Program-made: the position numbers and the translations under genes
Notes under the pieces: model-generated
The model's database searches: none
Told to the model about the DNA's origin: nothing
The model's input: only the letters and a program-made list of their open reading frames with translations
Shown here: positions 7,590-45,473 of the stretch, piece by piece
How positions within the stretch are numbered: position 1 is the stretch's first letter
Layout: each line of letters starts with the position of its first letter
Sequence record: OP953026.1
Length of the DNA: 64,000 nucleotides
Direction: 5' to 3' (one strand)

Positions 7590-7628
7590 TTATATTTTAT
7601 TTTTTTGTATTTAAAGCATTTTAAACAG

Positions 7629-7636
7629 TATATTAC
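7629..7636 (+). promoter_or_regulatory. early promoter
   Basis: TATATTAC with TATTTAAA/TTTTAAA upstream. Confidence 0.85.
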
Positions 7637-7679
7637 AAATGTGATAAAACTATCTAAATTGCAAATAGGTAAATCAATT

Positions 7680-24254: not shown

Positions 24255-24255
24255 A

Positions 24256-24669
24256 ATGACTAGTCAACTTATCGTAGTTGATTTACAAAACCCTAGAAAT
24301 AAACATATATACAGTGAATTAACTCATGAACACCCTAGAACAATAACATCACATCTAGTTGAAGAATTAGATGATTTTGATGTTCATCAATATTCATACC
24401 AAGCGGAGTATAAATCTGGGATTGATCTTAGATTAATATTCTTTTGGGATGGACCATACACTGAACCAAGAGAAGAAGGTTACGAACCAACTGATCTAGA
24501 GAAAAGGTGTGTGAAGTTGTGTAGGCAATATGAGGCTGCGATTAACGGGCAATTATCTGTAGTTGATCACTCTCGGTTCCGGACGGTGTGTACCTTCAGA
24601 TCAGATAATAGTTTACCAACAACTTTAGACTGGATTCATAAAGAACCCCCATCTAAAGAGGTTGTGTAA
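24256..24669 (+). CDS. hypothetical protein
   Basis: start moved to ATG 24256, immediately after the previous stop. Confidence 0.7.
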   Translation: MTSQLIVVDLQNPRNKHIYSELTHEHPRTITSHLVEELDDFDVHQYSYQAEYKSGIDLRLIFFWDGPYTEPREEGYEPTDLEKRCVKLCRQYEAAINGQLSVVDHSRFRTVCTFRSDNSLPTTLDWIHKEPPSKEVV

Positions 24670-24695
24670 AAAATAGTAAAAGAAATACACTATTC

Positions 24696-24790
24696 TATGT
24701 AGTTCCTTTACGATTGCTCTTTTATCTTAGTTTCAGTTTTGCTGAAGAAGTACCAATGAGATACCCTCCCCTGATCGGGGAGGGTTTTTG
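24696..24790 (+). ncRNA. candidate sRNA C (late promoter to terminator)
   Basis: TATGTAG start motif, no ORF, TTCAG/CTGAA hairpin, terminator 24763-24785. Confidence 0.45.
24763..24785 (+). terminator. intrinsic terminator
   Basis: ACCCTCCCC-TGATC-GGGGAGGGT plus TTTT. Confidence 0.85.
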
Positions 24791-24810
24791 ACATCTAAGA
24801 GGAAAATATA

Positions 24811-25191
24811 ATGTGCAAACAACATCGTGTAGTATCTATGAAAGTTACATGCACGCAAGCTCGCTATCCGATCGGTCTGTGCGATCTCGGATTTGATAAT
24901 GCTGCTGATGCTCGGCAATATCTACTAGATGTCGTCGAGTACAATATGGATCGTCTCCACCCACAACATGCTAATACATTCCAGCTACAAAATCTACAAG
25001 ACGGGTTCGTAGTATCCTACGATATCGAAAAAGATGGATCCGTTTATCTTCGGTTAACACTGGCGGCTGTAGCTTATCAATCAATCGATCTTGAGTTGGG
25101 GGTTACCGTTAAAGAAAATGAAGGGATCAGTGTTGTAATCAAAAATTGGATCAATGGTGATTATACTGCGGGGAACAAATACTTGCAGTAA
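24811..25191 (+). CDS. hypothetical protein
   Basis: 126 aa, GAGGA RBS. Confidence 0.8.
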   Translation: MCKQHRVVSMKVTCTQARYPIGLCDLGFDNAADARQYLLDVVEYNMDRLHPQHANTFQLQNLQDGFVVSYDIEKDGSVYLRLTLAAVAYQSIDLELGVTVKENEGISVVIKNWINGDYTAGNKYLQ

Positions 25192-25196
25192 TACCA

Positions 25197-25320
25197 TATG
25201 TAAAGAATACCCAAATCGGGATCTCCCGGACTATCTCCCTTCAGCGTTCCCGTCCGCAAATGAAGGTGCCGCCGAGATCCCACCTATTGATAATGCCCTC
25301 CCTTCGGGGAGGGCTTTATT
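25197..25320 (+). ncRNA. candidate structured sRNA B
   Basis: TATGTA start motif; GGGATCTC/GAGATCCC, CCTTCA/TGAAGG and GCG/CGC nested stems; terminator 25295-25313. Confidence 0.6.
25295..25313 (+). terminator. intrinsic terminator
   Basis: GCCCTCCC-TTC-GGGAGGGC plus TTTATTT. Confidence 0.85.
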
Positions 25321-25357
25321 TCGCTTAAGCCTATTTATTTTATTATAAGGGGTGAAA

Positions 25358-26089
25358 ATGACATATATCGTAAATGATGGTAAAGTCATGATTGCAGACT
25401 GCCTATTAATTGAGCGGAATAATGCAACTGATAGCATTGGGCGACTTCCAGTATTAGATAACGGTTATATTGATCTAACTGCTAAAGCTGAAGGTGTAGA
25501 TGTATATTACAATGATTGCCACAAGATAATTTTTCATCCGACTGTTACTTGGCAAGGCAAACGTGTTAAAACTATGGCTTTTGCTGGAACTATAGATAAT
25601 GTTTATGATCTATTGAATGCCCTTACCGCAGGTGTTGATTTAGCTGATTGGTTTAAAGTTGAAGTAAATATCTTGCCAGTCATAGAACGCAGGTTGTTTA
25701 ATGGTAATACTTCTATGATGTTCACTATGGAGAATGGTGACATATATACAGTTATTCTTAAAGACATGGGTATCAACATCACCAAGAAAGATTGGGCTCA
25801 TTTGGGTAGTGGTGTAGATGCAGTTAATAGTGTACTTGAGTTTATCCCTAATTGTAATGATAATGGATCAACCAAACTAACTGCACTTGAAGCATTTGCT
25901 ATTGCATGTGCACATACTACTACTGTAAGTCGTAAATTTGATTATTACATCCATGCTACAGGTGAGTACAAGCAAAATCAAGAACTATCAACTAAACAAC
26001 TAAAATGGATACTAGCGCGCATTCAAAAGCGGATGGATCTTACCCGCATTTTCAATGACCGCGAATATGCCAATAACATATGGGGTTGA
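25358..26089 (+). CDS. Ntn-hydrolase (HslV/proteasome beta-like) peptidase
   Basis: M-T-YIV..G..MIAD, K, MAFAG, LGSG, ALEAFAIA; ATG 25358 leaves Thr as the N-terminal nucleophile. Confidence 0.7.
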   Translation: MTYIVNDGKVMIADCLLIERNNATDSIGRLPVLDNGYIDLTAKAEGVDVYYNDCHKIIFHPTVTWQGKRVKTMAFAGTIDNVYDLLNALTAGVDLADWFKVEVNILPVIERRLFNGNTSMMFTMENGDIYTVILKDMGINITKKDWAHLGSGVDAVNSVLEFIPNCNDNGSTKLTALEAFAIACAHTTTVSRKFDYYIHATGEYKQNQELSTKQLKWILARIQKRMDLTRIFNDREYANNIWG

Positions 26090-26094
26090 TTTGT

Positions 26095-26610
26095 ATGAGT
26101 AATTCTAATATGGATATGCTATATTACACTAATGTAAATTGGGAGCAATATTTTCATCATGTGAAACAACGTGCAGATGATACTGTTAAAGTAATGTATA
26201 AACCTGAATATGAAGATCTTATTGATGAAGCATGTAGACCATTGATTAAATGGTTTAACCAATTCACCAATATTGCAACTATTTATTGTTGTTCAGGCCA
26301 TGTTGATGAAGAAACTGGTGGTAGCCCTGGATACATTAGTCTTTTATTTAAAGACACTAATGCAGAGAATTCTGCAATGCGTTTATTACGTGAAGCAATG
26401 TGTAAGGGGCGTGAGTGTAAGATCCCATTCGAAATTGAACTGGGGGCTTATTTCGGGCATCTACATGAGACCATTGATCAGAATCACTGGGTCGCCAATC
26501 TAGTCATCCGCACCAATAGCTACAAACGTAAAAATACGTATGATCGCTATTGGCATCGTCTTTACAACATCATAACAACATGTAATACTGAAGGTTTATA
26601 CACCGTCTAA
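26095..26610 (+). CDS. hypothetical protein with TIYCCSGH motif
   Basis: LIKWFN...IATIYCCSGH...GYI; TYW3 N-terminal-like pattern; start at ATG 26095. Confidence 0.7.
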   Translation: MSNSNMDMLYYTNVNWEQYFHHVKQRADDTVKVMYKPEYEDLIDEACRPLIKWFNQFTNIATIYCCSGHVDEETGGSPGYISLLFKDTNAENSAMRLLREAMCKGRECKIPFEIELGAYFGHLHETIDQNHWVANLVIRTNSYKRKNTYDRYWHRLYNIITTCNTEGLYTV

Positions 26611-28749: not shown

Positions 28750-28826
28750 TGGTGCCGCCACTCCGAATCGAACGGAGGACCTACGCATTACAAGTGCGTT
28801 GCTCTACCTAGCTGAGCTATAGCGGC
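28750..28826 (-). tRNA. tRNA-Thr(UGU)
   Basis: full cloverleaf, anticodon TGT, encoded CCA. Confidence 0.95.
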
Positions 28827-28909
28827 GGAATCTTCTACATATAGTGTATATGAAAGTATTATTTTATTTATTATAATAAATAAAGTTATATTCAAACATA
28901 TTTAAACAG

Positions 28910-28917
28910 TATATCAT
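28910..28917 (+). promoter_or_regulatory. early promoter variant (TATATCAT)
   Basis: same TATTCAAA..TATTTAAACAG context as canonical promoters. Confidence 0.6.
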
Positions 28918-28973
28918 TAACTTGATATTACTAAAAGTAATATTTTCTATTAATTGTAAATAGGATACTAAAT

Positions 28974-29111
28974 ATGAATATTGATCCAAAAACTCTTGGC
29001 ATTATTATTAGCACCACTATTGGCACCGTAGGTGCTCTTATTCTTACGTATGGTATTGCGAGAGCAGTACGTTGGAATAATAAACCTGATGTAAAAGATG
29101 TAGCAGAGTAA
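28974..29111 (+). CDS. 45 aa single-TM peptide in its own transcription unit
   Basis: AGGA RBS; MNIDPKTLGIIISTTIGTVGALILTYGIARAVRW...; own promoter and terminator. Confidence 0.7.
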   Translation: MNIDPKTLGIIISTTIGTVGALILTYGIARAVRWNNKPDVKDVAE

Positions 29112-29121
29112 GATAACATAA

Positions 29122-29144
29122 AGCTAGCCCATTAGGGGCTAGCT
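29122..29144. terminator. terminator at convergent junction
   Basis: AGCTAGCCC-ATTAG-GGGCTAGCT. Confidence 0.8.
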
Positions 29145-29168
29145 CTTATATTTATTTTTTTATTTGTT

Positions 29169-29798
29169 TTAACTTAGAGTACTATAATAAATAAATTTAG
29201 TTAATTCATCTTGTTGCTCTTTGATTATATTATTTTTCGTTTGTTTAACATTAATGTAATATTCAATAAATAACCAACGTCTATCATGTTTGGCTAAGTC
29301 TTTGAATTCAATTTTCTCAAATCGCCATGACTGTACAGTAGTCCTAATGAGATTACCGGATTTATTGATAATATACCCTTGCATGGTGTTAATTTGATCA
29401 TCGATAGTAGGCGTTGGTAAAAATATCAAATAAACACCATCTGTATTTTTAGTGTGCATACTTTTTAATTTATACATCATTGGGTTAAAGTATTCATCAC
29501 TTTTATGATAATCGCTTAATTCTAACACAGCATCAATCATCATTTTAGCGCTTTCAGTAACACCAACATTTAGTAAATAATCATTAAGCTCTTTTAATGA
29601 ATTATCTGTAAGTGATGCATCTATGTGTTCTTCACTTATAGGTTCATTATAAACTAGTTTATTAATAGTTGAATTAACAATATTTAGCCTATCGATATCA
29701 TAAACTGCTAGTGTTTGTTTACCAACATTTATTTTTAAGTCTTTACCTGATTCATTGATAAAATCATTTAAATCTACTTCAGTAAAATGAAAAGCCAT
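29169..29798 (-). CDS. hypothetical protein
   Basis: 209 aa, AAGGT RBS. Confidence 0.8.
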   Translation of the reverse strand: MAFHFTEVDLNDFINESGKDLKINVGKQTLAVYDIDRLNIVNSTINKLVYNEPISEEHIDASLTDNSLKELNDYLLNVGVTESAKMMIDAVLELSDYHKSDEYFNPMMYKLKSMHTKNTDGVYLIFLPTPTIDDQINTMQGYIINKSGNLIRTTVQSWRFEKIEFKDLAKHDRRWLFIEYYINVKQTKNNIIKEQQDELTKFIYYSTLS

Positions 29799-29957
29799 TT
29801 TTATACACCTTTATGTTTTCCGTAGTGTTAAATTTTATTAACACCCGGTTTCAAGTTGAGTTATGTGTAGAACTAATCTACAAATAATATTAACTCTATG
29901 TATAATTTTACTTATAAATAGACCACTCTATATAGAGGGGTATTAAGTCATATAAAG

Positions 29958-30053
29958 TTATTTTAGTGTGGGTCTAAATACAAACATTACGTCTACTTCA
30001 TCAGTTGGGTCGACATCATATTCTGTCCCAGTATTATCAATCGCAACCAACAT
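29958..30053 (-). CDS. 31 aa acidic peptide (tentative)
   Basis: GAGGA RBS; MLVAIDNTGTEYDVDPTDEVDVMFVFRPTLK. Confidence 0.4.
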   Translation of the reverse strand: MLVAIDNTGTEYDVDPTDEVDVMFVFRPTLK

Positions 30054-30055
30054 TC

Positions 30056-30178
30056 TCACATTCCTCGGTAAAGGGCTTTATGTGATTTAGATAGGCGAGT
30101 GATAAAATACCTAAATGCACTGAGATATTCTCTGATAAATCCTTTACCTTTATTAAAATTATCACCTACATGGACCAT
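30056..30178 (-). CDS. 40 aa peptide (tentative)
   Basis: MVHVGDNFNKGKGF...; abuts the next small ORF. Confidence 0.3.
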   Translation of the reverse strand: MVHVGDNFNKGKGFIREYLSAFRYFITRLSKSHKALYRGM

Positions 30179-30269
30179 TCAATCACTTTTATGTAGCTTG
30201 ATTTCAATCAATTAAAGGGTATAACGAATGTAATGTATTTATACACGAATATAGTTATCATAAGCTCAA

Positions 30270-30560
30270 CTACTTGGGGTAAAAGAGTGGACGGAGATCA
30301 GTCTCATGGTATTCATCTTTGATATGGGAAAAGTACTTATTGAAATTATCCACACTATACGAAGTTCTAAGCCCATTTGGCCAAATCACTAACATGTCAC
30401 CAACTTCGAATGCCGTGATCATAGCCTCAAAGTCTTTTATGTTTACATGATCATTACCAAGTTTCACGAATCGACATGCACGGAAACCACATTCCCAGTC
30501 AGACGACATCCATTGACCAGCCTCAGTAATCAGCTTTGCACGAACTAATGTCTTAGCCAT
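30270..30560 (-). CDS. hypothetical protein
   Basis: 96 aa ORF. Confidence 0.8.
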   Translation of the reverse strand: MAKTLVRAKLITEAGQWMSSDWECGFRACRFVKLGNDHVNIKDFEAMITAFEVGDMLVIWPNGLRTSYSVDNFNKYFSHIKDEYHETDLRPLFYPK

Positions 30561-30738
30561 ACTTGGTACCCCAGTTTATCGTTTTGTCGAGAAGAGCTTG
30601 ACTAGGTCGTTTATTACGAATCTGATTCTTAATAGACTCATTTAGCTCTTCCATCGTTTTCCGAACTTTAACTAATCGTTCCTTTTGTTCATTTGTAGGA
30701 ACACTACTAACTATATCTTGCAATGCTTTAAGTGACAT
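30553..30738 (-). CDS. hypothetical protein
   Basis: 61 aa, AGGT RBS. Confidence 0.7.
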   Translation of the reverse strand: MSLKALQDIVSSVPTNEQKERLVKVRKTMEELNESIKNQIRNKRPSQALLDKTINWGTKYG

Positions 30739-30799
30739 GTCTTTACCCTATTTGTATTCAGCTATAAGATTCAACTACTGGGTACTTTTACAAGACGAC

Positions 30800-30825
30800 A
30801 TAAAGGCAGCATTAGCTGCCTTTAT
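30800..30825 (-). terminator. terminator hairpin
   Basis: ATAAAGGCAGC-ATTA-GCTGCCTTTAT. Confidence 0.8.
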
Positions 30826-30869
30826 AGTTTACATAGTAGTGAAATATAACTAAATCTAAAACTATGAAT

Positions 30870-30945
<76 letters not shown>

Positions 30946-31106
30946 AGAATTATGGCGATTTTATATTAGAGATGAGTTACTGACAACCTAATATAGATAT
31001 GTAATAACTACATATTATTACAATCTGAGTATTATTTATTTCTTGTTATGACATTATGTAAATAACGTGTAGTTAATCTTATTAGAAACTATCAAAGTTA
31101 CTAATT

Positions 31107-31619
31107 CTAACTAAAACGAACCACCATTACCTCTGTACCAAAAGTATCTGCAACCCACTGGTTAAATTCTTTATCAGTGATACCGCGTAGGTTCAGATTA
31201 AATGAGGCATTGTCAACAAGAATATATTTTACAGACGATATTAATTCTTCTTTAATATCTTTTTGAATAGATGATTCCTCAGGTTGATGAATATATTTAC
31301 GGAGTTGGTGTGTAATTAAACAAGAAACAATATTATCTTTAGCATTCTGGAACTTAGCCAGTACAGCCTGTTTAATTTTATCTTCTACAAATACAGCTAG
31401 ACATTCGCCAGGATGACGATTAGCAAACTCAATCAATGCAGTTGTACTACCACATTGCCGACCTACAAATAATCCAACAGTCCTGTATTCACGAATAACA
31501 ATATGACCAATAGAATTAGATCGATAATTAACCCAGTTCTCATTCGTTTTTTGAATTAAAGCATCTAGGATATCTTGGTACTTTACAATAGTTCTTACAA
31601 ACTGATTAGAGTTAGTCAT
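31107..31619 (-). CDS. degenerate P-loop NTPase-like protein
   Basis: EYRTVGLFVGRQCGSTT (Walker A Lys replaced by Ser) and YILVDN. Confidence 0.6.
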   Translation of the reverse strand: MTNSNQFVRTIVKYQDILDALIQKTNENWVNYRSNSIGHIVIREYRTVGLFVGRQCGSTTALIEFANRHPGECLAVFVEDKIKQAVLAKFQNAKDNIVSCLITHQLRKYIHQPEESSIQKDIKEELISSVKYILVDNASFNLNLRGITDKEFNQWVADTFGTEVMVVRFS

Positions 31620-31903
31620 AATAGACTCCTTTATTACAATGTAGCATAGATTCAGTTTTTTAACTGGAATTAAATGCCGATTTTGAAAAGGTGATAAAAC
31701 CTTTTCTCATCTATAAATGAATTTATAATAGTAACAATGAATATAACCAGGGGTGGCAAACCCCTGGCATTTAGACACACTCTATAATAAGTTCTACCAC
31801 CGAGTGTGTTTAGTGGATAGATTTAAGAATACTTTATTATAGTACTCTTACATAATATCATCGTGCCAGTATAATTATCTAAATAGTTATAAATATTATT
31901 ATT

Positions 31904-32911
31904 TTAATCAATGATTAATGGTGCTAGTTTTACCTGATAGATACCTGATAACAATTGGCTTTTCAACATATATGCTCCACCACCAACTGGCATTTTAGAT
32001 CCACCTACAATGATCATGCTATTATCCGGACCTTTAGCTATAGATGAAATATTAAGGAATCCGATACCTAGTTCAAATGGTTCAGCCCATTTCCGGCGCC
32101 TAATATTAAAACGTTGTGCAAACATTTTAGTTACACCGCCGACATCAACAGCGTTAAGGTAATTAAAATAGTCCCCATCTACATAACCATTACCTTGCCA
32201 GATTGTTCCTTTATCAGCAGGTATAATCATCCAAGGTGTTTGCTCCCATATTAAGGTAGTTGCATTATATCGATAAACTTCAAGATTAGGTATGTTCTTT
32301 GTATTATCCCAACCACCAAAATGGTAAAAGTAACCATTATAAAAGAATAACTGTTGACCTGAACGAGCACCACCTGAATAGTCTTGCCCGCTAAGCCAAG
32401 ACTTACTTGATGGTTTTAATCGCATTGCGTTTACGCCAATTGGGTTAACGCATAGAATAAGATCATTACCATCTGATGCGGAGGCTGTGCCCCAAAGTGG
32501 TACGGGACCACTATATCGCTCAACCCTATTGCCTGTAGCTATATCAAAATGTTGTATAAAGTTAGATGTTCCCGTACCACCATTACCAGCCGAGTTCCAT
32601 CCAGTAATACCGCCATAAACAATAAAGTTATTCTTATGTAATGTCCCAAATCCTAAAGATACCCCTGGTAAGAATGTTCCAGAAGCAGTTGCACCTATAT
32701 CGGCAAATGGCGATATGGTAAAACGTCTGAACACAGTTGCAGCTGTTTGTCCTTCAGTATGATGACCAGATCCAACATACAGTGTATTTCCATCCACATA
32801 TGACATTGTACCAGCTAACGCTACAGGTAGATCACCTAATTTAATAATTTCATTAAATCCAACCAAGGGTAACTCTTCGCCTATATCTGGTGATAATAGT
32901 AATTCAAACAT
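31904..32911 (-). CDS. Kelch/beta-propeller protein (paralog 1), probably virion-associated
   Basis: repeated YxxGG(W) blades; MFELLL N-terminus; TATG late motif upstream. Confidence 0.8.
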   Translation of the reverse strand: MFELLLSPDIGEELPLVGFNEIIKLGDLPVALAGTMSYVDGNTLYVGSGHHTEGQTAATVFRRFTISPFADIGATASGTFLPGVSLGFGTLHKNNFIVYGGITGWNSAGNGGTGTSNFIQHFDIATGNRVERYSGPVPLWGTASASDGNDLILCVNPIGVNAMRLKPSSKSWLSGQDYSGGARSGQQLFFYNGYFYHFGGWDNTKNIPNLEVYRYNATTLIWEQTPWMIIPADKGTIWQGNGYVDGDYFNYLNAVDVGGVTKMFAQRFNIRRRKWAEPFELGIGFLNISSIAKGPDNSMIIVGGSKMPVGGGAYMLKSQLLSGIYQVKLAPLIID

Positions 32912-32961
32912 GAGTATATTCTCAAGTAATACAGTTAAGTCATAAGATAAACGGTAACGGC

Positions 32962-32989
32962 ATAAAGGCAGCCAAATGGCTGCCTTTAT
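32962..32989 (-). terminator. terminator hairpin
   Basis: ATAAAGGCAGCC-AAAT-GGCTGCCTTTAT. Confidence 0.85.
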
Positions 32990-33063
32990 AAGGTGTAAAG
33001 ACTGTTACCAATACTAAGGTACCCTGCCCCTCTGTGAGGTTCTAGCATTGGTGTACGTAACAC

Positions 33064-34077
33064 CTACTTATCACTTGGTGGTAGTGGAGCAGGAAGGATG
33101 AACTTGTATATTTCTGTCTTCGTTTCTGCCTTTCTACCGAACGGTGGGTTAGTCGAGCCCAACGGAATTGAACATCCGCCAACCAGATACAGCTCTCCTT
33201 TATTACCAACCACACCGGTCGCGTTGCGATAGCTAATACCCGTATCAAAACGAATAAATCTTTTACCAGACACATCATAGCGAACCGCACCGAGTTTACT
33301 ACCACTCCAGCTAATATAGCTGAAGATACCTTCATGGTAGTTACCGGCGCCCTGGTTACCACCATGGTATTCGGTAGGTAATATATCGTACACTTCCCAC
33401 AATTGTGTATAAATCGACATTCTCATGATTGTCGTCATTGCTGTCCCAGCATCGAATTTCGCCAGGTGATCCGGATTTGATGCAACACTGGATCCCCATC
33501 CACCCATCACGTAAATGTAGCCTTTATGTTTGAATATAAAAGCACCACTTAGACTAGCAGCAGGAAAGCCTTTCGGGCTGTTATGATAGACGCCATCGGT
33601 TGTGTAATAACCGAACTGATTACTATCGTGGAATTGGACGTAAATTCTGTTGTTATCTTCGTCAAATACCGTGGAGTTACCATAGTTCCCACGAGGAGTG
33701 CTCCAACCAAGATTAGTTATAGTCTCCGCAGAAGCATCTATGGCATGGACCACGCTAGAACTCCAGCTACCATTAGACCTACCGTTGATTAAATAAACTC
33801 TACCAGTTCGTGAGTCTTGCGCTGGATTCGTATGATAGATGTAGTTGCTTAAATTCTTATTATTCTCAAACGTACCATCTAATTTAAACCTGCGTAATCC
33901 TGGATCACTAGAACTAACATCTGTACCGCCACCCTTAACGAATAGTTTATCGTTCCAAATATAAGGGATAGAACCATGTAACGGAATATCCAGGTCAGCT
34001 ATTTTTTCATAACCGATATATTGTACTAATTCAACTGGCTTTATTTTACCACTAGTTGCTAATAGTAATTCAAACAT
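33064..34077 (-). CDS. Kelch/beta-propeller protein (paralog 2), gp298-like
   Basis: LFVKGG, IYVMGGW, LYLVGG; MFELLL N-terminus. Confidence 0.85.
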   Translation of the reverse strand: MFELLLATSGKIKPVELVQYIGYEKIADLDIPLHGSIPYIWNDKLFVKGGGTDVSSSDPGLRRFKLDGTFENNKNLSNYIYHTNPAQDSRTGRVYLINGRSNGSWSSSVVHAIDASAETITNLGWSTPRGNYGNSTVFDEDNNRIYVQFHDSNQFGYYTTDGVYHNSPKGFPAASLSGAFIFKHKGYIYVMGGWGSSVASNPDHLAKFDAGTAMTTIMRMSIYTQLWEVYDILPTEYHGGNQGAGNYHEGIFSYISWSGSKLGAVRYDVSGKRFIRFDTGISYRNATGVVGNKGELYLVGGCSIPLGSTNPPFGRKAETKTEIYKFILPAPLPPSDK

Positions 34078-34131
34078 GAGTGTGCTCTCAAGTAAATCAT
34101 TTTAATTCATAAGATAACCCATGGCAACATA

Positions 34132-34155
34132 AAAGAGTAGCCGAAGCTACTCTTT
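34132..34155 (-). terminator. terminator after tRNA pair
   Basis: AAAGAGTAGC-(TTCG on - strand)-GCTACTCTTT. Confidence 0.85.
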
Positions 34156-34161
34156 AGAATA

Positions 34162-34237
<76 letters not shown>

Positions 34238-34243
34238 ATTAAA

Positions 34244-34320
34244 TGGCGCGCCCAAGGGGACTCGAACCCCTGACCACCCGCGTGACAGGCGGGTATTCTA
34301 ACCAACTGAACTATGAGCGC
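34244..34320 (-). tRNA. tRNA-Asp(GUC)
   Basis: cloverleaf, GTC, CCA. Confidence 0.95.
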
Positions 34321-34372
34321 AAACGTATGGACATGACTTCCTACATAGTATTACATAACCAGTAATATTTTA

Positions 34373-34720
34373 TTACGGGCGATCAGTCCAGTGCTTGAAA
34401 TAGTTACCATCCTTGGGACGATCGTACTTAGCAAGAATATTTTTAAGTTCTTCGCCGGACAACTTAATACTATCGCCTACTGGGCTATCCAGTTCAGGGC
34501 AAGGTTCAGTTTTACGTGTAATGATTAAATTATCAGTCCCATCTTTGAAGATAAAGATAAACTGCGTTTCATTAGCACTAATCTTTTTCTTAACGCAATG
34601 CTTTACTTCTGGATGTTTCTTGTGGATCGCTACAAAAGATTCAACAAGAGTTAGCTTTATAAACTCAGGGCTAATAAATGTGAAATATACAGCGCTCTGC
34701 GTTGGGGTTAGATGATCCAT
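34373..34720 (-). CDS. hypothetical (possibly virion) protein, gp299-like
   Basis: 115 aa, GGAG RBS. Confidence 0.8.
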   Translation of the reverse strand: MDHLTPTQSAVYFTFISPEFIKLTLVESFVAIHKKHPEVKHCVKKKISANETQFIFIFKDGTDNLIITRKTEPCPELDSPVGDSIKLSGEELKNILAKYDRPKDGNYFKHWTDRP

Positions 34721-34722
34721 AT

Positions 34723-35028
34723 TTACTCCGTATGTTTGAGATAGGCTTTAACTGCTTTAAGACCTTTATTAAAGAACATAGCTTCAACATAAGTAATGTT
34801 ACTTACATCCTCGCCGATAAGTTCCCATTTGATGCAACGTGTAACAGCGTTGATTGTAATATCTAATCCGTTTGGGAATAGGGTTACTTCATCGGTCAGG
34901 TGAATCCAATCGGGAGCCTTCGCTCCATTACGTAAACGGGGACTAAAAGTAAGATTATAAAGTGTTTGTAATGGTTGTCTCAATAGTTCTTTTTGTTCTT
35001 GATGTTCCATGTATTTTCCTAGAGACAT
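34723..35028 (-). CDS. hypothetical protein
   Basis: 101 aa ORF. Confidence 0.75.
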   Translation of the reverse strand: MSLGKYMEHQEQKELLRQPLQTLYNLTFSPRLRNGAKAPDWIHLTDEVTLFPNGLDITINAVTRCIKWELIGEDVSNITYVEAMFFNKGLKAVKAYLKHTE

Positions 35029-35240
35029 TTAAAAATATAAATAGAATGGTTATCTCTTTCGGTTATCTTTAGAGTATTCTCATTTCGAATAACTTCAAGA
35101 GACTTGTATTTATGTTCCAGAATATCCAGATGAGAAATACACTGTTCCCTATTTTCAAATAGGATATTACTTTCATTAGTCGAAATGAAACCAAATAATC
35201 CAACTTTGATAGATAATACCAACATTATTACTGTATTCAT
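35019..35240 (-). CDS. small protein with N-terminal hydrophobic segment
   Basis: start moved to MNTVIML (GAGGA RBS, after terminator). Confidence 0.7.
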   Translation of the reverse strand: MNTVIMLVLSIKVGLFGFISTNESNILFENREQCISHLDILEHKYKSLEVIRNENTLKITERDNHSIYIFKCL

Positions 35241-35266
35241 GTTTTCCTCAATGAGACAGTATAAAA

Positions 35267-35284
35267 CCTCCCCCAAGTGGGAGG
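35267..35284 (-). terminator. terminator hairpin
   Basis: CCTCCC/GGGAGG stem with TTTT on - strand. Confidence 0.75.
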
Positions 35285-35292
35285 CTAGTATA

Positions 35293-35369
35293 TGGTGGGC
35301 CCAGCAGGACTTGAACCTGCGACCAAGCGATTATGAGTCGCCTGCTCTAACCAACTGAGCTATAGGCCC
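35293..35369 (-). tRNA. tRNA with CAU anticodon, probably tRNA-Ile2 (lysidine type)
   Basis: GCAGGCGACTCATAATCGCTTGGTCGC matches the ileX-type body as recalled. Confidence 0.85.
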
Positions 35370-35376
35370 TTTTTAT

Positions 35377-35670
35377 TTATTCTGGTAAGAATGTTCCATC
35401 TTTTTGACGGACTAATACACCTGACCATTTGAATGTATTTGTATCACTAGCAGGGCACTCTCTAATTACATTGGTTCTAAATGTGCCATGTGGATAGGTT
35501 ACAGTGAATGTAATATGGTTATTACAAACATGTAATACAGAAGACTTTGCTTCTGTTAGATAGTGTAAGCCTTGAGCTAATTGAATATTAGTTAATTCAG
35601 GGTCACTAAGAATAGCGTAAAGAGCTGTTCCTATAATTTGATGTTCCCATGATATCCATTTATTATCCAT
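35377..35670 (-). CDS. hypothetical protein
   Basis: 97 aa, AGG RBS. Confidence 0.75.
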   Translation of the reverse strand: MDNKWISWEHQIIGTALYAILSDPELTNIQLAQGLHYLTEAKSSVLHVCNNHITFTVTYPHGTFRTNVIRECPASDTNTFKWSGVLVRQKDGTFLPE

Positions 35671-35691
35671 CCTATTTACCTATTATTAAAA

Positions 35692-35767
35692 TGGTCGGAG
35701 TGGGGAGACTCGAACTCCCGACATCCTGCTCCCAAAGCAGGCGCGCTACCAACTGCGCTACACTCCG
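35692..35767 (-). tRNA. tRNA-Pro(UGG)
   Basis: cloverleaf, TGG, CCA. Confidence 0.95.
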
Positions 35768-35776
35768 TATTTAAAT

Positions 35777-35861
35777 TGGTGCCCGAAGTCGGATTCGAAC
35801 CGACAAGACCGTAGCCGGAAGATTTTAAGTCTTCTGTGTTTACCAATTTCACCATTCGGGC
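35777..35861 (-). tRNA. tRNA-Leu(UAA)
   Basis: cloverleaf with long variable arm, TAA, CCA. Confidence 0.95.
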
Positions 35862-44884: not shown

Positions 44885-44915
44885 TTATGTCATGTATTCA
44901 AATGTATTTAAAGGG

Positions 44916-44923
44916 TATATTAC
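44916..44923 (+). promoter_or_regulatory. early promoter
   Basis: TATATTAC. Confidence 0.85.
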
Positions 44924-44974
44924 AAAGGTGAATTAAATACAGATTATTCTATTTATTATTGAGGGGTGCAGTCC

Positions 44975-45379: not shown

Positions 45380-45419
45380 CCCTTCCCTACTGATAATACA
45401 TTCAAACCATTTTAAAGCG

Positions 45420-45427
45420 TATATTAC
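45420..45427 (+). promoter_or_regulatory. early promoter
   Basis: TATATTAC. Confidence 0.85.
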
Positions 45428-45473
45428 AAACTTGATATTAAACCTTTAATTAATGTAAAAAGGAATCTATACC

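Follow-up and report, generated by a model that had tools for sequence, protein, structure and literature searches.

We analysed a 64,000-nt stretch of the sequence record OP953026.1, here called the window, and report on a structured RNA element in the 166-nt gap between PHIKZ288 (24811-25191, + strand; stop codon 25189-25191) on its 5' side and PHIKZ289 (annotated at 25358-26089, + strand) on its 3' side. The window comes from a phiKZ-type (Phikzvirus) genome. Over 1.2 kb around the element, it shows 100% identity to several Phikzvirus isolates and 99.4% to phiKZ, and the RNA region itself is 100% identical in the window and phiKZ. Window coordinates are converted to those of AF399011 by adding 237971. 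The GC content is 53-57% over 25200-25319, compared with about 30-40% in the surrounding DNA, and the GC-rich island that the initial annotation had described in AT-rich DNA between TATGTA and a terminator was thus found in place. The hairpin element occurs once in the window and once in each of 46 Phikzvirus genomes. gp288 was found in Phikzvirus alone, and our literature search found no paper naming PHIKZ288 or PHIKZ289.

Results

The promoter of the element, P130 (25177-25200, + strand), is of the phiKZ middle type, with an ATACTT box at 25179-25184 and the TATG at 25197-25200, and it overlaps the stop codon of gp288. The P130 region is unchanged across Phikzvirus, the single change lying just upstream, at 25176. 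Transcription starts at 25201, and a single-stranded 5' leader of 17 nt (25201-25217; unpaired probability at least 0.94) precedes a 64-nt irregular hairpin, domain 1 (25218-25281). A single-stranded linker (25280-25294), composed of CCACCUAUU (25280-25288) and a variable A/U-rich part, leads to the terminator T119 (25295-25321), which consists of an 8-bp GC stem with a TTCG loop (25295-25314) followed by UUUAUUU, the 3' end of the RNA being at 25321. All these features are on the + strand, and T119 was detected by a terminator consensus scan.

ONT-cappable-seq of phiKZ (Putzeys 2024, microLife; PMC10914365; bioRxiv 10.1101/2023.10.13.562163, Tables S3-S7) is the source of the transcript data. 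It mapped TU198, a 120-nt + strand RNA with its TSS at 263172 (25201 in the window) and its TTS at 263292 (25321 in the window), which is the same object as the RNA at 25201-25321 (PMC10914365). These published ends agree with the discrete RNA of some 120 nt that the initial annotation postulated between TATGTA and the terminator. Taken together, the published mapping and the terminator scan show that the RNA is initiated separately and ends at a defined point, an intrinsic terminator. In Table S7, TU198 is listed as a "5'UTR-derived" ncRNA candidate of PHIKZ289 with an RNAfold value of -46.60; unlike several of its neighbours in the table, it carries no validation or Northern blot entry, and the paper gives no structure analysis, homologues or function for it (PMC10914365). 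P130, at 263172, was classed as a middle promoter; TU195 and TU197, which start from P128 and P129 (gp287-288), also end at T119; and PHIKZ289, with no promoter of its own after T119, is reached by read-through of that terminator (PMC10914365). Because the transcripts from P128 and P129 cross the hairpin and end at T119, the element is also the 3' UTR of PHIKZ288 transcripts. For such units, two outcomes were described, either a short RNA or read-through into a long transcript, and short products were stated to predominate in this class, a statement not specific to the TU198 locus (PMC10914365). The phiKZ dRNA-seq paper does not mention the RNA, nor does the Grad-seq paper, in which two other phage ncRNAs are reported.

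Several other features were observed in the window. The terminator family CCCTCCC-TTCG-GGGAGGG plus CTTTAT repeats at 1222, 7570, 11779, 25296, 46465, 54923 and other positions, and early-promoter blocks ending in TATATTAC are also repeated (for example, at 1254-1288, 7603-7637, 44890-44924 and 45394-45428); for this reason, queries containing the terminator find several places per genome in blastn. PHIKZ290 (26080-26610, + strand) gave a sub-threshold Pfam match to a TYW3 methyltransferase (E 0.0014; 18.4 bits against a cut-off of 27). Seven tRNA genes (Thr, two Asn, Asp, Met, Pro and Leu) lie on the - strand at 28750-35861, at least 3.4 kb downstream of the hairpin, and the two tRNA-Asn copies are 96% identical. 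ARAGORN placed all seven of its tRNAs in this region and none at the hairpin, where cmscan gave no tRNA match either, and we rejected a tRNA relic as the origin of the element. A weak match of our covariance model over the tRNA-Met (35253-35390, E 0.14) was insignificant.

RNAfold of 25197-25325 (+ strand) gave an MFE of -46.6 kcal/mol (z -3.89), which none of 200 dinucleotide shuffles matched. Every stem and loop listed in the initial annotation was recovered in this MFE structure: an outer stem (GGGAUCUC at 25218-25225 with GAGAUCCC at 25274-25281), a middle stem (CGG at 25227-25229 with CCG at 25269-25271), an inner stem (CCUUCA at 25238-25243 with UGAAGG at 25261-25266) and an apical stem (GCG at 25244-25246 with CGC at 25255-25257). 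These are the four helices of domain 1, for which the MFE fold, covariation and the folds of homologues all speak. Its asymmetric internal loop region (25229-25239; unpaired probability 0.78-0.97) has ACUAUCUC (25230-25237) on the 5' side and UG (25267-25268) on the 3' side, and its apical loop, UUCCCGUC (25247-25254), comprises 8 unpaired nucleotides. A GGUGC segment (25265-25269) contains the UG bulge, flanked by the last two inner-stem pairs and the first middle-stem base. A single fold dominates the ensemble, with pairing probabilities of about 1 in the stems and about 0 in the loops. The hairpin alone has a folding energy of -23.9 kcal/mol, and the terminator is a separate hairpin that folds independently of domain 1.

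The initial annotation had also suggested a switch in which AUCUC (25233-25237) pairs with GAGAU, and this suggestion did not stand. Both sequences are present, but the forced pairing gave -39.4 against -46.6 kcal/mol, 7.2 kcal/mol worse than the main fold, and the partners are not conserved. In homologues, the outer 3' strand is GAACUCC, GAAUUCC, GCACUCC or UGACCUC, so that the switch pairing is impossible in them. An antiterminator was rejected on two grounds. Constrained folds showed no mutually exclusive pairing, the hairpin persisting when the 5' arm of the terminator was blocked, and the comparison of homologues showed that the terminator sequence evolves independently of the hairpin.

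Within the genus, we compared the window with the T2P/U5/U1B clade. The hairpin is identical to the T2P clade at 62 of 64 positions (97%), and the stretch from the promoter end through the leader and hairpin (25192-25281) at 87 of 90 nt, where the divergence of the flanking genes gp288 (82% identity) and gp289 (79%) would predict about 18 changes. Identity to the same clade is 75% for gp290, 70% for the terminator, 69% for the region before the start codon and 62% for the linker (from 25282). The terminator stem is kept in the T2P clade by compensation, with CUCUCC/GGAGAG in place of CCCUCCC/GGGAGGG. Across all Phikzvirus records, we counted five substitution events, one each at 25209, 25210 and 25273 and two at 25259; every one falls on an unpaired position, two are within the 5' leader (25209 and 25210) and none is in the two C-rich loops. 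This conservation, together with the pattern of substitutions, argues for selection on the sequence of the hairpin, beyond the mere presence of a hairpin. As judged from sequence comparison, a changeable terminator beside a fixed hairpin is the pattern expected of a functional core plus a generic terminator.

A second published ncRNA candidate of phiKZ lies upstream at 24700-24789 (+ strand; 89 nt). It is described as "5'UTR-derived" of PHIKZ288 and runs from the early promoter P129 to the terminator T118. This candidate is 100% identical in the T2P clade, and the intergenic region 24255-24810 is 97.5-100% identical there while its flanking genes diverge.

Beyond the genus, gp289 has homologues (39%) in the Pseudomonas syringae jumbo phages Psa21 and D6, and upstream of these genes we found a TATG-type start, a hairpin, the CCACCUAUU tail and an intrinsic terminator. 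The stems of the Psa21 and D6 hairpins differ from those of phiKZ, and the loop sequences are the same. Further copies were found in IMG/VR contigs with a three-motif pattern, and one in RVTF4 by blastn. In all homologues of this short form, in which the terminator directly follows the hairpin, an A(A/G)TA(C/G)T box recurs about 25 nt 5' of TAT(G/A)T. We then ran a covariance model built from 11 sequences on the syntenic loci of further phages. PS119XW (55.5 bits, E 2e-9), Phabio (45.8 bits) and PhiPA3 (34 bits, E 1e-4), none of them a training sequence, matched as independent members at 34-55 bits; the window, itself a training sequence of the model (R1), scored 116.7 bits (E 5e-23). PA1C, phiLBG22 and HPP-Temi also matched. 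The model found no copy in the one 201phi2-1 locus examined, and a marginal match in Viktualia (21.6 bits), which overlaps an annotated CDS, was not counted.

IMG/VR searches with gp289 alone and with an exact 21-mer of the hairpin returned PA7 only. A looser three-motif pattern gave 19 loci in IMG/VR, among which the PhiPA3 copy alone passed the model. A scan of metagenome and genome collections with an outer-stem pattern gave three matches in GC-rich bacteria with no shared interior, which we regard as chance. The initial annotation had made its proposal depend on structural conservation in other Phikzvirus genomes; the structure proved to be conserved, and to covary, well beyond Phikzvirus. 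From these comparisons, several Pseudomonas jumbo-phage lineages share one structured RNA family, which we define by the four-helix hairpin, GA..AUCUCCC, U.CCCG in an 8-nt apical loop and the GGUGC bulge region.

Covariation was scored in two alignments. In the MAFFT alignment A4, of 11 sequences, scored with the structure proposed in this analysis, 92.6% of cells pair, compared with 36-47% when the partners were slid by 1-3 columns; compensatory double changes were seen in 12 of 21 pairs, and the covariation score was 0.54 against at most 0.10. In A9, an alignment of 16 sequences that was fitted to the model and leans to it, 91.9% of cells pair (36-44% in the shifted controls), 16 of 21 pairs are compensatory and the covariation score is 0.675 against at most 0.13; independent lineages are few in both alignments. 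Several pairs occur with three or four Watson-Crick types. The pairs 25225-25274 and 25243-25261 of the phiKZ fold are lineage-specific. Folded alone, each homologue adopts the four-helix architecture of domain 1, with an internal loop of 8/2 nt and an apical loop of 8 nt. The covariation of the stems indicates that the hairpin is held by selection on RNA structure. Invariant in A9 are GA..AUCUCCC in the internal loop, U.CCCG in the apical loop, GGUGC and some positions of the CCACCUAUU tail; the tail is kept in all short-form members and varied in PhiPA3, PS119XW-like phages and Phabio. The invariant C-rich loops would fit a role in recognition.

Around the element, a gp287 homologue and then variable genes precede the RNA; after it come, in some members, a small membrane-protein ORF, and then homologues of gp289 and gp290.1 in that order. 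A gp289-family gene is found downstream of the RNA, either directly or after one to three genes, in 14 of the 16 aligned members (about 9 of 11 distinct lineages); those of PhiPA3 and PS119XW are distant gp289 relatives (hhalign probability 98.4 and 98.7). All short-form members have the same layout of promoter, conserved structure, intrinsic terminator, and SD and start codon within about 10-40 nt. Two members bear on the question of cis or trans action: the IMG/VR contig L020 (IMGVR_UViG_3300044878_000087, 1860-2330) keeps the RNA and the small ORF without gp289, and Phabio (L032 6786-7970) has the RNA with unrelated genes downstream and no gp289 homologue. Small hydrophobic proteins of 56-77 aa, absent from Phikzvirus, are encoded between the RNA terminator and the gp289-like gene; their ORFs are at L013:1334-1504, L014:1286-1504, L025:2143-2376 and L020:2015-2203 (- strand), in Psa21, D6, RVTF4 and the IMG/VR contig.

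gp289 homologues occur in at least six jumbo-phage lineages, and their N-terminal Met-Thr is invariant. A structure model of gp289 (mean pLDDT 68) matched 20S beta subunits and Anbu in Foldseek (E 4e-6, TM 0.45-0.5), and the predicted protein looks like an Ntn-hydrolase of the proteasome-beta/HslV/Anbu type. At the sequence level, gp289 has a weak PHROG match (phrog_1040, E 5e-5) and none in Pfam and PDB.

In the PhiPA3 and PS119XW group, no terminator directly follows the hairpin, so that these phages would make no free 120-nt RNA. There the hairpin opens a GC-rich leader some 390 nt long (PS119XW, L030:6363-6735; PhiPA3, L029:6231-6610), which ends in an intrinsic terminator immediately ahead of the gp289-like start. 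The leader is strongly structured (z -5.4), shares blocks including GCUUUCGGUGU, UCUCUCCG and AAGUUACGACG, and had no match in an Rfam search. An RNAalifold consensus for this long form was set aside; some hairpins look shared, and the alignment is too unreliable. The Phikzvirus isolate KEN49 (vB_Pae3705-KEN49, PP456877) has about 285 extra nt at the same junction of hairpin and terminator (L003, about 1640-1930). This segment is unique among the 46 Phikzvirus genomes, has two short CDSs across it in GenBank, and matched nothing in Rfam, nor any other phage record. Resemblance to the PhiPA3 extension is confined to roughly the first 36 nt, where 31 of 36 positions agree (z 6.5). We do not claim homology of the whole segment because an nhmmer profile of the PS119XW/PhiPA3 extension did not detect the rest of it. 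The segment may be a retained ancestral long form or a gained insert.

Discussion

We regard it as highly probable that the element is a real, functional and transcribed structured RNA. The most likely reading of its function, to which we assign a probability of about 0.45, is that of a riboregulator for which, as we infer, the invariant loops are the means of action. Transcription by the phage non-virion RNA polymerase starts at 25201 from the middle promoter adjoining the gp288 stop codon and covers the 17-nt leader and the 64-nt four-helix hairpin. Most transcripts would stop at T119 (3' end 25321), and this termination would leave an abundant 120-nt RNA, with the read-through molecules becoming gp289 mRNA. 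The hairpin may then serve as a sequence-specific recognition platform, and the 120-nt RNA would present its invariant C-rich loops to a partner, for which a G-rich RNA segment or an RNA-binding protein of the phage or the host is a candidate. The generic, freely evolving terminator would only release and stabilise the RNA.

Action of the RNA in trans, to which we give slightly less than an even chance, is favoured over gene-specific cis control because the RNA persists where the downstream genes differ. As for seeds and targets, the loops are invariant and unpaired, and their complements are not enriched in the 64-kb window, GGGAGAT being rare if anything; perfect complements of accessible segments are at or below the chance level there. 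The anti-SD role raised in the initial annotation is conjectural, and for the downstream RBS it was rejected, since only 3-5 bp can form there, inconsistently among homologues.

The main rival, which does not exclude a riboregulator acting in trans, is a cis-acting leader or attenuator for the operon of gp289. By binding to the hairpin, a small ligand or a factor from phage or host would alter read-through of the terminator, which lies just 5' of the gp289 ribosome-binding site, and thereby time the expression of the proteasome-like protein, the 120-nt RNA being a by-product of the OFF state. We consider this possible but distinctly less probable than the riboregulator. The conserved structure does precede the same gene family, with L020 and Phabio as exceptions, as is expected of riboswitches and attenuators. 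The layout of promoter, structure, terminator and SD is common to all short-form members, and a gp289-family gene follows in Phikzvirus, Psa21, D6, RVTF4, several IMG/VR contigs, PhiPA3 and PS119XW, where the upstream genes differ; such a linkage, in 14 of 16 aligned members, is what a cis-regulatory leader would look like. The two transcript modes of the source paper (PMC10914365) and the lack of a promoter for gp289 after T119 also agree with a leader, and the PhiPA3 and PS119XW hairpins, having no direct terminator, speak against a free RNA acting in trans. However, mutually exclusive terminator/antiterminator pairings did not appear in the constrained folds, where hairpin and terminator fold independently. 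The terminator diverges freely whereas the hairpin is fixed, and thus there is no co-conserved complementarity between them. Moreover, L020 and Phabio keep the RNA without a gp289 homologue, and transcripts of the upstream operon that carry the hairpin still end at T119.

A purely structural hairpin with no specific partner would protect the 3' end of the gp287-288 mRNA, the 5' end of the gp289 mRNA or both from nucleases, or would insulate adjacent transcription units. The great stability of the fold, including that of the hairpin alone, would suit such a stabiliser, which we nevertheless hold to be unlikely. It requires pairing rather than sequence, yet what varies across genera is the stems, with the loops, the 2-nt bulge and the 3' tail invariant, and the neighbouring terminator, which is truly generic, drifts (62-70% identity).

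The chance of a processive antitermination RNA, similar to HK022 put or Bacillus EAR, in which the nascent hairpin makes the phage polymerase resistant to terminators, is smaller still. The element is promoter-proximal, has conserved loops and no alternative pairing, and is followed by a terminator and then by genes, all of which would be expected of such an RNA. Nevertheless, the transcripts that carry the hairpin (TU195, TU197 and TU198) end at the very next terminator. A single hairpin also differs from the two-stem architecture of put. Short products predominate in this class, as stated for the class and not for the TU198 locus (PMC10914365). Finally, a small protein ORF or a DNA-level palindrome in place of an RNA gene is very improbable: an ORF of 64 aa (25154-25348, + strand) does span the element and several GenBank records annotate a hypothetical protein CDS, but its reading frame runs through the terminator, the spacing of the invariant motifs varies by 9, 12, 13 and 15 nt among homologues so that no frame is kept, the stem changes are compensatory rather than synonymous, and the start and end of a + strand RNA have been mapped (PMC10914365).

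Among known phage RNAs, the gp182-5'UTR sRNA of phiKZ with sRNA005 of 201phi2-1, conserved in EL and PhiPA3 (PMC11512511), is similar to the present RNA in being a jumbo-phage small RNA that is terminated just after its promoter, precedes a conserved gene and crosses genera. It differs in locus, sequence and fold and lies upstream of a tail gene, and the parts of the source that were accessible base its conservation on alignment and single-sequence folding, with no covariation statistics in those parts (PMC11512511). Transcription attenuators of bacterial 5' leaders, both riboswitches and protein-dependent ones, also have a conserved structure between a promoter and an intrinsic terminator upstream of one gene family, but the phage RNA has no competing terminator/antiterminator folds and no Rfam family, and it survives the loss of the downstream gene. 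In Firmicutes, RsaE/RoxS and RNAIII combine stable hairpins and unpaired C-rich (UCCC) motifs with a following intrinsic terminator, and motifs of this kind pair with G-rich Shine-Dalgarno regions. The phage RNA, by contrast, has no target found in the window and weak complementarity to the downstream SD, and its host is Gram-negative. HK022 put and the Bacillus EAR are promoter-proximal structured RNAs with conserved loops ahead of terminators; in the phage, the hairpin transcripts stop at the next terminator, and the architecture is different.

The Rfam search by cmscan that the initial annotation had recommended assigned the element to no family. The best matches were Phe_leader (18.5 bits, GA 55) and rnk_pseudo (18 bits), and the matches of the window were driven by the terminator, with E about 4 (Rfam 15); the loci of KEN49, PhiPA3, PS119XW and Phabio gave nothing in Rfam. 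The protein sponge and the RNAP decoy named in the initial annotation are likewise conjectures, and neither Rsm-sponge nor 6S-like features were present. As a sponge for RsmA/CsrA, the 120-nt RNA offers two GGA sites, at 25228-25230 (CCGGAC, at a stem/loop junction) and at 25219-25221 (paired in the outer stem), and none in the hairpin loops, which are C-rich. As a 6S-like decoy of RNA polymerase, a 64-nt hairpin with an 8/2-nt internal loop stands against a duplex of about 180 nt with a large bubble, and there is no Rfam match to 6S.

Our literature search found no paper describing the RNA family, which also has no Rfam match. Thus, the transcript itself is known from published work, but its place in a conserved family that is supported by covariation and occurs in a long and a short form appears to be new. 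Beyond the listing of TU198, the present analysis contributes the island of conservation, the family across genera, the covariation and the long form.

Conclusions

Regulatory RNAs of strictly lytic phages are known largely as lists of candidates, very few of which have comparative support. One candidate of phiKZ, the model nucleus-forming jumbo phage, now has a fold backed by covariation, invariant nucleotides that can be mutated, and natural variants (short, long, and with or without the downstream gene). The conserved neighbour of the RNA is a proteasome-like protein that is itself uncharacterised. We suggest, tentatively and as a rather unlikely case, that domain 1 could be the core of a new class of riboregulators in nucleus-forming jumbo phages, a module recognising protein or RNA that, in PhiPA3 and PS119XW-like phages, makes up the 5' domain of an RNA of about 390 nt and that is functionally tied to the operon of the proteasome-like (Ntn-hydrolase) protein. 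If this were true, the 120-nt RNA of phiKZ would be the smallest version of a larger and so far undescribed RNA machine or sensor of phages. If the element is only a leader, it would be among the first conserved cis-regulatory RNA elements described for a phage-encoded multisubunit polymerase. A conserved middle-phase RNA could also bear on the control of expression across the nuclear shell, or on host RNA-binding factors.
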